64,000 nt of DNA from Chrysemys picta bellii (Eukaryota), in assembly GCF_011386835.1 (NCBI RefSeq), contig NC_088795.1, positions 54,064,001 to 54,128,000 of the forward strand. The letters run 5' to 3'. The position numbers and the translations under genes are program-made. The notes beneath the pieces were generated by a model, which was not told the origin of the DNA, made no database searches, and saw only the letters and a list, made by a program, of their open reading frames with translations. Numbering within the stretch: position 1 is the first letter of the stretch; each line of letters opens with the position of its first letter. Below, piece by piece: positions 15,401 through 24,400 of this stretch.

Positions 15401-18400
15401 ATGCTTGCTCTTTTTTCTATTTTTCTTGATAAATCTTGTAGGAGGCAGAATATTCAGCTGCTCTTTTTGTCATAATTTCCTCTGCGAAGATGATCAGTTT
15501 GAGCATCAAGCCAGCTGCCAAGTTTTGGAGGCAGAGACATTTAAATGTAAGTTATCCACTTAAAACCCCTTTCACCAATGTTAAGCAGATTCACTTCTTC
15601 CTACTGTGTAATAATACCTGCTTAGGTGGTGAAAAATGGCCTGGTATTTCACTTGTCCAGTGTGATTATCCCAGCTGGTTAGGCAACAGGAGTTTTTCTT
15701 GTTGGTCCCTTAGAAATAATGTTGGCTCTGTCTAGCATGGCTGCACTTCCCCAGATTCCTTGTGGTTCAGCTGGAACTCCTTGAATAGAAGACAGGAGTT
15801 TTTGGTCAATGTGGGTTAGCATCTGAAGAAGTGAGTTTTGAGGAGGGACTTGAATCATGCACTTGGCCTATTGTGTAGAATACAGCACAGATGAAGGCAC
15901 GAAGAGGAATGCGAGAAGGATGCAGAAGGTGTGGAGAAGTTTTTTTATCCAAAGTCCATGGGCTTTGGATCAGGGCCTATAAATATAGATATAGAGAGAG
16001 ACCCTTTGCTCTCTCTCTCTATGTATAAAGCAAAGGGTCAACATTCATATTTTAACAGCACATACTTTAATACATAGATCAAAGAACAGGAAACTACAAG
16101 CTATCAAATTTTGATTACCATAGGGGGTCTGGTACAGCCATAAAATCATGTGGGCAAAACTTAAAAATCTCAGATGGACTTGAAACCTTACAGGAACAGA
16201 GGAATTGTAATATCAGATCAAACTGGTGGTCTAGCTAGTCCAGTATCCAACCATAGCCAATTCCAACTATTTCAGAGGAAGATGGGGGGAAAAAAAGAAC
16301 TGGTAGTAGGCATGTATGAAACATACTGTCCATAGGATAATTTTCTTCTTGTTAATTAGGGGATGGCTTATGCCCAACACATGAGGGTTTATACTGCTTT
16401 CAAAACTTGGTTGTGTTTGGTTTTGTGCCTTTTTTTTTTTTTAAAAATCCTTGCTATCCTGACTACACGTTCTTGTTGTCCATATAAATGCCCAGTCCTT
16501 TTATGAATCTACTAAGCTCTTGGCCTCAATGGTAGCTCATGATTCAAAATATTCCTGTTTTAAATTTTATAATCTATTTTTCTAAGTCTCCCCTCTCCTT
16601 TTCATCTCTCATTCCTTTTTTCCCCCTGCCAACTGTTGCCTGAGCCTTGATTAGCTCCCCTTTATGTACTGCCAGAATGCCTTCCTGTGAGGCACCATTG
16701 GAGCAGCAACTGCTGCTCAAAAGGGATAATTTCCTCTTGATGGGTTGACTCTTAATTCACAGCTGTGACGTTACAGTGAGTGAAGAAGTTACTTTACAAG
16801 GTTTACACTATGTTTAACATTCTACAGCACAGGGTAATCCTAGTAGAGAGATGGACTGTGTGAGATAGTTTTATATTAAATTTAAATATTGTCAAACAGA
16901 TATGGCCAATCCCACTCTAGCTACAAAAAGTGTTTTATTTCATAAGTTTGAAATATAAAATGTAGCTGTAAAAAAACCCAAAACACATTTACAAGTGCAG
17001 ACTACCTCATGGGAATACTTTAATGTACTAATTAATATTCACAGTGCCTTTGAATATGACAGATCCCCCACCTCTGCTCAGCTTCTGCAAAAGGAAGAAT
17101 CCCTACTGTTCATTTCTGAAGCTTTAAAAGCTTGTTCTCACGGTTGGCTGAGAGTGAGATGGCGGTTTGGTTATAAACAATGCACATGATAAAATATTTG
17201 TAAAGATTCAAAACAAGCTGTGCATGGTCATGCATTCTTTATCCAACAAGCCTCATTAAGGTATAAAATCCTATTTCATTTCATTTACAGTACTCCCTCT
17301 TGTGGAGATAAAAATAAAATGAAAATATTAAGGCAACCTAGATTTTATAGACACCATCTAGGGTGACCAGACGTCCCGATATTATCGGGACAGTCCTGAT
17401 TTTAGGGGACTTGTCCCACATCCCGACCTTACATTGGTCAGGACGTCTGGTCACCCTATATGAGGGGTACCATGGCAAGCCGGCACTGCCGGCGCCACTC
17501 ACCTTCTCTCCCTGGGCCCTGGGGCAGCGCGCAGCTGAGCTCCCGGCGTGGCAGCGCCAGCTCACGGGGCCCCCCGCCTGGCCAGCAGGAGCCTGCAGAG
17601 CGCAGCCCTGCTCCTGCCCACAGAGAGGCAGCGAGGAGGTCTTGTTCTCCTACGTGCTGCAGTGGGGCGGGAAGGGGCCAGAGGGACTAGGAGGGACCTG
17701 CCTGATGGATGCTTCCTGGGAGCCGCTCCATGTATGCACTGCTGGGCTCACCTGGCCCCCTGGCAGGTCCCTCTGCCCTCAGTCCCCCTGACCCTGTTCC
17801 CTCAGCCTCCCCCGCAGTTCCCCCTGTGCCCCCCAACCTCAATCCACTGCCCTCAGCCCCCACCCTGACCCTGTTCCCTCAGCCTCCCCCGCAGTGTCCC
17901 CCCTGTGCCCTCCACCCTCAATCCACTGCCCTCAGTTCCCCTGACCCTGTTCCCTCTGCCTCCCCCAGTCCTCCCTGTGCCCCCACCCTGACCCTGTTCC
18001 CTCAGCCTCCCCCCTGTGCCCCCCACCCTCAATCCATTGCCCTCAGTCCCTGCCCCTGTTCCAACAGCCTCCCCCCCCCCTCCCCCCGATCATCTCACCC
18101 TGCATGGATCTGGAAATCTGTCCGGGATTCCAGGCTGTCGTTAGCCCCTGGGGCAAAAGATCAGCAGAGGTTTCCAAAGGGAAGTTTGCAGCCTTTGCTC
18201 AGACCCAAACATTTTCACTTAAAAAAAAAAATAAATAAATATCCAAACCCATCCTGACACCCATCTGCTCTGTCCAGATTTGCTGTTATCCCTGTTGAGG
18301 CCAAAGTGGTTTGAAAAATTAAAAATCCTTGACACCATTGTGTTGCCTCCTCCTGTGTTGCTCGTTAATCTGATGGACCTGCCGATAATGAATAAAGATT

Positions 18401-21400: not shown

Positions 21401-24400
21401 CGGTGAGACCAGGTGATCACAGGATCTCTTCTGGCTTTATAATCTCAGAACTAGGTACATCAATTCACATGCAAAATTCTCATTGAATTCAATAGGTGTC
21501 CTTGCCCTGTGCCTTGTGGTGCGGGCTGCAGCAGGGGCCGTTTCAACCCCTCTCGCAGCTTCCTAGGGCCCCCTCTCATGGCTCTGTGCACCTGTGTCTG
21601 TCATTGTCGTCCTCTCCCCTCCCCGCTCACCCAATGTGTCCTGATATTTCACTCTTGCGATCTGGTCACCCTAACACCATCAACCCAGTTCTGCTCCTTG
21701 TTACTTGTGTATTTGCTATCAATAAAATTACACTGGATTGTATATGTAAATATATGTAATGAGTATGATTTAAATAAGGACATGACAGACAATTCTTTAT
21801 AAAACTACTCACAGACAGCTCAATTCTGCAAGTTGCTAAGCATCATCAAATCCTTTTCAAATTAGGAAAATAAGGGTAAATCGGCATTTTGCCCTTACTT
21901 TAAATGGAATGTTACTATACAGCTCTGGTGGGTTTTGTTTTGTTTTGATACCATGAGAGCGGAAAAAAGGCAGTGAAACCACCTTGTGAACAAACTATGG
22001 TTTCAATCATCTCCAACATGTTTGTAAAGATGTGAGAATGCAAAAATATTTGAATCTTTTAAAAAAATTGGTTTTGGGTGGGTTAGGGACCATTTACTCT
22101 CAAACGTATACCAAATTAATGAGATATTAGACTCAGTATATAAAACTCTTTAAAATAGCCCAATACAACTGTAACTACAGTGAGTATGATTGTAGCAAGA
22201 TACACTTATCATAAGGACTTCAAAAAATACAAAATCATTACTTTTATACTTTAAATTCAATGTATGTTCAGAACTTCAGTGGCAGACAACTCTGCAATTG
22301 GGTAGCTTTGGGAACCGTTGATCAGGAAAAGCTACTGAGAAATGAAGGGTCCTTTCAAATAATATATTTGGCTAAATATGTATTTCCCTGTATTATCTTT
22401 TCATTTTGTTTGGTGACACTGGTGATTTTAGGCTACCTATGGTACTGGAGAGCTGATCTGGATGTATAAAGTAGAAGAAAAGAACCAAGTTACCTTTCAT
22501 TTTTAAAGATTGATGTTATCCATTTTTTCATCAGGTGTTTCCTGTAATCGGCTTGGGCAGCATTCATGCCTGCGTTGTAAGGTAAAAATATAGATACTTT
22601 AAGTAACTATAATTGTAACTCCTTCTCCTTACATGTCCTTCTGGTATCAAGTCTTGTCACATCTCCCTTCACAATATATAGAAAACTCATACCTTCTGTA
22701 TGAGGTAAGGGTCATTACTTTTAATGTCCCTTTTGTCCAGCACTTTTAAGTTTTTAATTTCTCATTCTTGCTTTCGAGGGCTGCATCTCTCATCTCATTT
22801 GGCGTTATTTCCCTCTACCCCCACAAACACCCCCCCCACTCTCCCCCTGCATCCTTCAGTTCTGTTAGCCTAGCCAGGCTCTTCTCCGTTGTTTCCTGCT
22901 CCCATTTTCATACAGTCTTCAATGCTGTTTCCTCTGCACTGAGCGTATGATTCTCCCATTCCAGTATCCCAGGCCTCCACCTTTTCCTCCTTTGGATCAT
23001 TCCTAAAGTCTTACATCAAATCAAATGTACTGTCCACTCCAACATTTTTCATTAGGGGGGCAATTTAAATAAATAAAAAAATCAATCTAATTAACCCCAT
23101 TCTCTCAGTCTCCTATTCTTACTGTGTGCGCCTCAGAGTTCAGAGCAGGAACTGTCTTTATTGAAGTTTCCTGGACAGGGTTGAGCACACTGTTGGTGCT
23201 TAATTAGTACTAATTCACATTGGTGTCTTCTTTTAGTTACAAACTGACTGACTGTGTGGCAGGGAGAGGTTCCATTTAGCAGGACAATGAACACACTGCC
23301 CTGCAAGACAGACATTTGAAGTTTAGTTTTGTTTTCTTTTAACTTGTTGGACTAACCCAATACCTATATGGCTGAGGTCTATCAGACAGTGCTCCCAGTG
23401 ACTGAGGCCAGCCTCCTGGCTGACAACTTCCAAGACAGGGCACTCCTTGAGGACCCTGTTTCCTCGGCCACCATCCTCTTTTCCCAGTTCCAGCATCCTC
23501 CTGGCTTCCCTTCCCTAGAAGGCAGTGGAACCTTGTCCAGCACAGAAGCAATTAGTGGATAGATTGTACACGAATTCCAGTCCCACTATAGAAAGAACTA
23601 GTTAAATTTTAATCTCAGCCAGATTACCCTGGTGCTGTTAGAAATTTAACTTTTTTTTTTTGCCTGCTGCTTGCTGAAGAGCATTATGTTATGACAAAAC
23701 TTTTATCCTTTTCATTATCCCCTTCAGGCTTGTTTCTGTGATGATCACACCCGAAGCAAGGTTTTTAAGCAAGAAAAGGGAAAAGAGCCTCCTTGCCCTA
23801 AATGTGGGCATGAAACTCAGGAGACAAAGGATCTGAGCATGTCAAGTAAGGACTGTCCTTGAAATGCTAATGGAACAAATGCTGAGTCTCTAATTTAGCG
23901 AGTCAATTTACTAGGAGTCTTATTTTCTGTGTTGGAAAACTTAATATGTTCATCTTTTTCAACTGGCAGCATGTGATGCCATTGGTGGCTGTGTAGGGAT
24001 GTATGGGAATACTGAAGTTCTTGAATGCTTTGGAATGTTTTGGGGAGTTTGTCGCATTTATATTGAGAGTACTTTGAGTTGTTGCTGACTCTGAGCTGCA
24101 GCATCTCTTCGTTAGGATTGCTATTTGTGCCCTGGAGATTGACAAGGTTATGAATTTGAGTGCTACTTTCAAGTTGTGGTCTAAGGAAGAAGTGCCCATG
24201 ATCACTGTTTACTTCTGCTCTGTCACTTCTTATTTCACCATCAAGAAAGAGCATGCTGAAATTCATTAGAAGATACCCACATGAGTCTGCTTACTCAGCA
24301 CTGCTTATCCATAAAAAACACACATTATCTTAGGTGCTATATATCTATATATAAAATACCTATTTATTACAGTACCAGAAGTGTGCTCTACAGCCAAAGT

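Follow-up and report, generated by a model that had tools for sequence, protein, structure and literature searches.

As is well established, the hAT superfamily is defined by an 8-bp target-site duplication (TSD) and by short terminal inverted repeats (TIRs) of the (C/T)AG(A/G)G type. A TAGGG start is found at one end of Ac, and vertebrate repeat libraries commonly contain long hAT families whose interiors are unrelated. Maize Ac/Ds forms macrotransposons and composite insertions (Huang and Dooner 2008; Zhang et al. 2014; Wang et al. 2022, as cited in PMC9910405), in which two linked elements in direct orientation are mobilized through their outermost 5′ and 3′ ends together with the intervening DNA, an 8-bp TSD or footprint being left behind. 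Such composite units can excise, reinsert and increase in copy number (PMC9910405). In animals, hAT is the commonest carrier of Pack-TIRs (208 of 370), and multicopy Pack-TIRs are rare, with four cases and three copies in the detailed example (PMC8277862). The present study concerns a block of about 4.3 kb (17359–21673) inside an intron of ZNF330 in a 64,000-nucleotide stretch of the Chrysemys picta bellii genome (assembly GCF_011386835.1, contig NC_088795.1, positions 54,064,001 to 54,128,000; hereafter, the window).

A preliminary description of the window had placed here a composite or Pack-type hAT element carrying captured genomic DNA. The feature is real, it was correctly located, and it is a single hAT-type insertion with a composite anatomy, in which two units of the miniature inverted-repeat transposable element (MITE) type in the same orientation, M1 (100 bp) and M2 (801 bp), bracket 3.4 kb of DNA. 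With a probability of roughly 0.55, we regard the block as one copy of a ~4.3-kb non-coding, non-autonomous hAT-type family, whose composite layout was fixed in a founder and then amplified. Most likely, this family comprises roughly 10^2 copies in the genome of C. picta bellii and its close relatives.

The block resembles non-autonomous hAT elements (Ds-like and hAT-N families) in its short TIRs starting with TAGGG, its 8-bp TSD, its unrelated interior without a transposase detected by Pfam scan, its many copies and its short repeated subterminal motifs, represented here by clusters of GTCCYGA. Unlike ordinary hAT-N elements, it has two extra, unused inner termini, and its layout is MITE/DNA/MITE rather than end/deletion scar/end. 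The block is also like the maize Ac/Ds macrotransposons, which belong to the hAT superfamily, use their outermost ends, carry intervening DNA and leave an 8-bp TSD. However, the maize cases are single, recent and experimentally followed events of 10–28 kb with known donor sites, whereas the block in the ZNF330 intron is ancient, is without a donor found and belongs to an apparent family of ~10^2 copies. In its mode of action it corresponds to a non-autonomous hAT element of the Ds type, and in its appearance to an Ac macrotransposon. Like Pack-TIRs and Pack-MULEs, it is a TIR element carrying non-transposon DNA between its ends. What defines a Pack-TIR, in contrast, is a host-gene fragment that it has captured and whose parental copy can be identified, whereas the interior of the block is repeated and its open reading frames (ORFs) yielded neither a Pfam family nor a protein homologue. 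The interior may have a non-coding parental locus, and its copies are far more numerous than those of the multicopy Pack-TIRs (PMC8277862).

Outer termini and composite layout of the block

The 8-mer ACACCATC at 17351–17358 lies immediately upstream of the terminus TAGGGTGACCAGA at 17359–17371, and TCTGGTCACCCTA at 21661–21673, the inverted copy of TAGGGTGACCAGA, is followed by ACACCATC at 21674–21681. The outer 13-bp TIRs and 8-bp duplications reported in the preliminary description were thus confirmed, with all eight duplicated letters matching. The perfect 13-bp TIR TAGGGTGACCAGA is a short TIR of the (C/T)AG(A/G)G type, and ACACCATC, matching 8/8 on the outer ends, is the 8-bp TSD expected of a hAT element. 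At no more than one mismatch, the 13-mer TAGGGTGACCAGA has seven occurrences in the window, where 0.15 would be expected, and none of 100 shuffles reached seven. Four copies are perfect, at 17359 (+), 17446–17458 (−), 20873 (+) and 21661–21673 (−).

The two inward-facing termini at 17446–17458 and 20873–20885 had been described as having unmatched flanks, and this also held, the 8-mers TATGAGGG and TACAGAAA beside them matching the flanks of their partners at 0/8 and 1/8 positions, compared with 8/8 for the outer pair. A duplication on the outermost ends only, together with unrelated inner flanks, is what a composite is expected to leave. By chance, an 8/8 flank match would arise with a probability of 1.5e-5 per pair, or ~6e-5 across the four possible left/right pairings. 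As an 8-mer, ACACCATC is unremarkable (5 copies in the window vs 2 expected), and its weight is its placement at both termini. The outermost-only TSD marks the whole 17359–21673 unit as a single hAT-type insertion; given this geometry, the entire block entered in one hAT event.

M1 and M2 each have both termini and are therefore two complete elements in direct orientation around carried DNA, although M2 is interrupted by a CR1-like piece. Because they share their orientation, the outermost ends form a proper left-plus-right pair. The first 49 bp of M1 have 86% identity, in the + orientation, to the left end of a 124-bp MITE at 5819–5942, and the last 37 bp of the block (21637–21673) have 84% identity to the right end of the same MITE.

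Copies of the block in four organisms

Logan contigs from four runs (X1, X6, X11 and X13), which are labelled as representing four organisms and four studies, were aligned to 16700–22300; their depths are based on 31-letter words, and summed contig depth is not equal to copy number. Both outer junctions were present in all four organisms (records 1, 8, 9, 16, 17, 24, 25 and 32). The preliminary description had named an empty site in other turtles as a check; no empty site was found among these four related organisms, all of which carried both junctions, and the block is an old fixed insertion at the same place in the four. X1 differed from the window at 2 of 687 flank bases, indicating that it is the same species, and the flanks of the other three organisms were 1.5–1.8% different from the window, with most differences common to all three.

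The single-copy flank contigs extended from 16700 (16925 in X11) to 17383–17386 and then from 21645–21647 to 22300. The last 31-mer with unique flank ends at ~17386, and the first one on the right starts at ~21647. Since the flank contigs break where the 31-mers become wholly internal, repetitiveness starts and ends within ~3 bp of the TIR termini. Between the outer termini, the k-mer depth was ~30–250 times that of the single-copy flanks in the four organisms, as listed below with the CR1, MITE and minisatellite bins left out.

X1: flank depth ~40–60; interior 7,660–18,364
X6: flank depth 28–64; interior ~1,300–10,800
X11: flank depth ~4.9; interior 140–310 over 18196–20439
X13: flank depth 42–93; interior ~2,400–12,600

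The C-rich bins at 18757–19130 were below these interior ranges in three of the four runs. The M1 bin reached a depth of ~144,000 in X1, from which the M1-type MITE family appears very abundant. In X1, the summed contig depth of each interior bin came to ~8,000–30,000, as opposed to ~40 for the flanks. Depth was comparable to the left and right of the inner-right junction in X1 and X11. High-depth contigs tiled 18368–18619 and 19516–20682, and the following records show how little they differ from the window copy.

X11 record 10: 18368–18619 (252 bp); depth 127 vs 4.9 single-copy; 5 differences
X11 record 12: 19516–19800; depth 207; 3 differences
X6 record 27: 19621–19838; depth 1,307; 2 differences
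X6 record 28: 19920–20034; depth 1,797; 2 differences
X13 record 21: 19969–20415 (450 bp); depth 2,389 vs 42; 9 differences
X11 record 13: 20169–20682 (516 bp); depth 234 vs 4.9; 12 differences
X11 record 15: 21239–21384, inside M2; depth 147, near that of the neighbouring interior; 2 differences
X13 record 20: no differences

Altogether, the collapsed family contigs (eight records) differed from the window copy at 35 of 2,124 bases (1.6%). This copy-to-family distance is about twice the per-lineage share of the 1.5–1.8% flank divergence, which, assuming similar rates, agrees with an insertion older than the common ancestor of the four organisms and so fits its presence in all of them.

Two junctions were also seen in copies other than that of the window. 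The inner-left junction was found in X6 record 26, which spans 17384–17550 at single-copy depth with 17 differences in 166 bp, and X1 records 2 and 3 (~11% diverged) begin in or just past the inner terminus and run into the GC-rich segment. At position 17468, which is 10 bp from the inner-left junction, 17–25 contigs with a depth of ~3,400 were aligned in X1 and X6, carrying G where the window copy has T. The inner-left junction between M1 and the cargo is thus common to diverged paralogous copies. On the right side, X1 record 7, a 535-bp single-copy contig, matches 21556–21673, stops exactly at 21673 and continues into 410 bp of unrelated DNA; it is a paralogous insertion with the same right terminus and a different flank. 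Depth, boundaries and this paralogous right end together indicate many copies at different loci with shared termini, full-length copies not being directly seen.

The preliminary description had regarded the interior as GC-rich unique DNA. Since every interior bin was far deeper than the flanks, the depth boundaries coincided with the outer termini and the M1|cargo junction was shared, the cargo is not unique DNA. A composite or Pack-type capture that occurred once at the ZNF330 locus, either through a single joint move of two adjacent MITEs and the intervening 3.4 kb or through gap repair that copied this DNA in, would leave a block that is itself single-copy and looks multi-copy through ordinary repeat families in the captured chunk. 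The TIR and TSD geometry fits such a capture equally well, recognizable unrelated repeats (CR1 pieces and a minisatellite) are present inside, and the depth is not perfectly flat. Furthermore, maize provides documented examples of Ac macrotransposons that have 8-bp TSDs (PMC9910405), and the animal Pack-TIRs, 208 of 370 of which are hAT, are mostly single-copy (PMC8277862). However, the baseline depth was alike over more than 3 kb in X1 and X11, whereas unrelated families would be expected to lie orders of magnitude apart, as the CR1 and MITE bins do, and the high-depth contigs were continuous over 19516–20682, passing through the supposed sub-repeat boundaries. In addition, the M1|cargo junction is multi-copy, the repetitiveness stops exactly at the outer termini, and a donor locus or captured exon was not found, making a single capture at this locus unlikely. 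Of the origin proposed earlier, the same-orientation MITE/3.4 kb/MITE architecture stands, while the one-off capture of ~4 kb of unique DNA conflicts with the multi-copy interior and the recurrent inner-left junction. Given the multi-copy interior, host genomic sequence was probably not freshly shuffled into the intron.

The preliminary description had also raised the possibility of an assembly chimera. The 4.3-kb continuity of the interior is provided by the assembly, the short-read contigs breaking inside it, and a mis-joined repeat, or unrelated MITEs with flanks that agree by coincidence, might in principle look similar. Against this, an 8/8 flank match would arise by coincidence with p ~6e-5, contigs from four organisms and four studies contain both outer junctions without any sign of artefact, and the interior is unlike single-copy intron DNA. 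We therefore consider a chimera or chance resemblance highly improbable.

Interior of the block, host gene and related elements

The features of the block and its flanking duplications are as follows; the label CR1 derives from what we take to be CR1 3′ ends.

17351..17358, no strand: left 8-bp TSD ACACCATC, 8/8 match with 21674–21681
17359..17458, + strand: M1, 100-bp MITE-like unit with the outer left terminus and 18-bp perfect TIRs, TAGGGTGACCAGACGTCC and its inverse
17459..17760, + strand: GC-rich segment adjoining the inner inverted terminus, 70% GC, CpG observed/expected ratio 0.41
17761..18095, + strand: C-rich minisatellite, period ~77–79 bp, from repeat search
18096..18695, + strand: non-coding multi-copy interior, 48% GC (X11 record 10; X1 bin depths 7,660–8,508)
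18696..19230, + strand: C-rich degenerate repeats akin to the minisatellite, from repeat search
19233..19499, + strand: CR1-like 3′ fragment, 77% to 40082–40344 and 71% to 47033–47271, depth >170,000
19500..20872, + strand: AT-rich non-coding interior ending at the flank TACAGAAA, unique by eye and multi-copy by contig depth
20873..20887, + strand: inner left-type terminus TAGGGTGACCAGATG, start of M2, from sequence matching
20888..21450, + strand: second CR1-like fragment within M2, 20934–21056 being 75–80% to two CR1-like copies
21451..21673, + strand: right subterminal region and outer right terminus, the last 37 bp resembling the right end of the 124-bp MITE
21674..21681, no strand: right 8-bp TSD ACACCATC, from sequence comparison

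The GC content is ~54–70% at 17500–18250, dips to 44%, rises to ~58–64% at 18500–19250 and remains at 34–48% on to 21500. The segment at 17459–17760 was considered as a CpG island and rejected, its CpG ratio of 0.41 being under the usual 0.6. The minisatellite announced in the preliminary description has a core of 2.8 copies with a 79-bp period at 17773–17984, with degenerate copies to 18095 and at 18700–18810, and its two CR1 fragments were recovered as CR1-like, with 71–80% identity to other copies in the window. Contigs of all four organisms connect 17775 with 18702 through 15 other letters and so bypass 926 bp; either 17776–18701 is missing from some family copies, or the minisatellite blocks cross-align.

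Pfam scanning of stop-free stretches within 17359–21673 found no transposase, in line with the earlier description of the interior. The long open frames of the interior are Pro/Ser-rich translations of the C-rich repeats. No Pfam family was detected in ten non-repetitive stop-free interior pieces (at least 59 aa scanned), a weak test for a decayed gene, and a protein search gave no homologue for a 142-aa ORF spanning M1 and the inner junction. Comparison of the interior ORFs with Pfam and protein homologues revealed no captured exon or donor locus. ARAGORN detected no transfer RNA-like gene in the interior, and the tRNA-like short interspersed nuclear element pieces suspected at ~20100–20260 and 20700–20790 were rejected on this basis. 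A BLAST search with the element against the 64 kb returned other copies of the MITE ends and CR1 pieces only, and no match to the exact patterns of the inner junction or the MITE left end was found in metagenome data.

Mapping of a bird ZNF330 protein placed eight coding exons on the + strand, two of which were confirmed as NOA36 by Pfam. The block lies inside a 6,988-bp intron (15549–22536) between coding exons 5 and 6 and fills 62% of it; the translation of the exon before this intron ends with ETFK, and that of the exon after it begins with CVSCNRLGQ. The ZNF330 context of the preliminary description is thus correct, although its intron number 7 presupposes two non-coding 5′ exons. A search with an exon retrieved a full-length ZNF330 representative. 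No turtle ZNF330 was present among the 15 listed members of the 672-member 90% cluster that holds all the amniote proteins, and the ORFs overlapping a ZNF330 exon came from short or non-turtle contigs only. The sequence data examined gave no sign of an effect on ZNF330, and at present the block is best described as an ordinary intronic transposon insertion that is ancient and fixed.

Two further elements of the window carry TAGGG-type termini.

5819–5942: 124-bp MITE with the same termini as the block, flanks TATGTGAT and TGTGTGAT, TSD 7/8
13674–14280: 607-bp hAT-like non-autonomous element, TIR TAGGGTTACCATA related to that of the block, perfect 8-bp TSD ATAGTGTC

Judged from their letters, these two elements and the block, with 8-bp duplications and TAGGG-type short TIRs, appear to fit the hAT superfamily. 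Clusters of GTCCYGA lie within ~90 bp of the termini of TAGGG-type elements (7 of the 13 occurrences in the window), and this motif is a candidate subterminal binding site. The 124-bp MITE is ~350 bp upstream of the ZNF330 start-codon exon (6292–6411), in or near the 5′ region of the gene. The 607-bp element, which has a subterminal hairpin and a G-rich, GC-rich interior, starts 50 bp downstream of the ZNF330 exon ending at 13623 and is followed directly by a second MITE at 14293–14631 with the TIR CAGTGGTTCTCAACC, presumably Charlie-like, and flanks TGTCTAGA and GGTCTAGA that match at ~7/8, varying with the placement of the right end. A lone terminus with one mismatch, TAGGGTCACCAGA, at 41290–41302 (−) has no partner within reach and may be a relic end or a chance match. 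Outside the block, a 218-aa stop-free frame at 42995–43648 (+), which may resemble the GIY-YIG end of Penelope-like elements, had no Pfam hit at E 0.01 or better.

These neighbours bear on another possible history, in which the starting point was an ordinary non-autonomous hAT element (a left end that folds back, a GC-rich body and a right end) that subsequently grew through nested insertions, namely the two CR1 fragments, the repeat at 19500–20872 and a truncated MITE leaving the 15-bp terminus; the inner termini would then not be composite relics. In favour of this history, the 607-bp element shows that the combination of a TAGGGT-type TIR, a hairpin and a GC-rich interior is an established design in this genome, and M1 forms a strong fold-back DNA hairpin (−29.3 kcal/mol, z −7.5). 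The right subterminal region at 21486–21640 shares the high GC content, and MITEs are numerous in the intron. However, the termini follow one another as +,−,+,−, as in elements lying side by side, and not as +,+,−,−, as in nested ones, and the supposed nested pieces are without TSDs of their own, for which reasons we reject nested insertion as the main explanation. Furthermore, the orphan perfect 15-bp terminus requires an ad hoc deletion, the depths of host-element and nested parts are the same within ~2-fold in X1 and X11, and among the 15 listed of 460 joints there is no single-copy contig of the other three organisms in which a nested part is missing. Later inflation of a simple element is thus doubtful, about as much so as a single capture at the locus.

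Proposed origin of the family and its meaning

Considering these results together, we suggest that the founder of the family arose, and the copy in the window moved, in the following way. A hAT transposase, supplied in trans by an element outside the window, would have recognized the left terminus of M1 (100 bp) and the right terminus of M2 (801 bp), and everything between them would have moved as one piece into the ZNF330 intron, with duplication of the 8-bp target ACACCATC. The arrangement of two MITEs around 3.4 kb of non-coding DNA that includes old CR1 pieces, with unused inner termini and mismatched inner flanks, is most simply explained as the scar of a founding composite event. Movement of a macrotransposon is one candidate for this event, and composite insertion through alternative transposition of a linked pair of elements is another; in either case it probably took place once, before the amplification of the family. 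The two known hAT routes by which the founder may have arisen are macrotransposition of two linked elements in direct orientation and composite insertion through reversed-ends transposition with re-replication. We infer the identity of the transposase, the single founder event and the membership of every interior segment in the family unit. More specifically, two linked hAT MITEs may have been mobilized once as a macrotransposon together with 3.4 kb of ordinary non-coding DNA and then have reached about a hundred copies in turtles, a version of the founder event that we put forward only tentatively.

Several observations weigh against reading the block as a copy of a multi-copy composite family. 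A full-length second copy was not seen among short-read contigs, which are too short to cover 4.3 kb, and summed contig depth should not be equated with copy number. In X1, the per-position depth varies more than 10-fold, from ~1,500 to 26,000, so that some interior parts, such as ~20440–20470, may represent distinct repeats of higher abundance. No paralogue directly displayed the inner-right junction 20872|20873, whose support is the similar depth on both sides, and the window held no autonomous partner with TAGGGTGACCAGA TIRs, which would encode a hAT transposase with a BED finger, a DDE and a hAT dimerization domain. Moreover, hAT elements have a weak target preference for nTnnnnAn, from which ACACCATC departs, having C at position 2 and T at position 7; of the other two TSDs, ATAGTGTC agrees at position 2 only and TGTGTGAT at position 7 only, three sites being few for a weak preference.

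Most probably, the block represents an unexceptional, ancient member of a non-autonomous family with many copies, and it illustrates that, for a TIR-bounded block with unique-looking cargo, copy number should be established before the label of Pack-type capture is applied. If the MITE/DNA/MITE layout is family-wide, the family would be a vertebrate case of an amplified composite hAT unit, and, should it be confirmed as a composite, its ~10^2 copies would make it unusual. If the founder was indeed a macrotransposon, every copy would take a GC-rich segment with moderate CpG enrichment, together with a minisatellite, to further introns, and composite transposition would be a birth route for new vertebrate transposon families, beyond the rearrangement of single loci.

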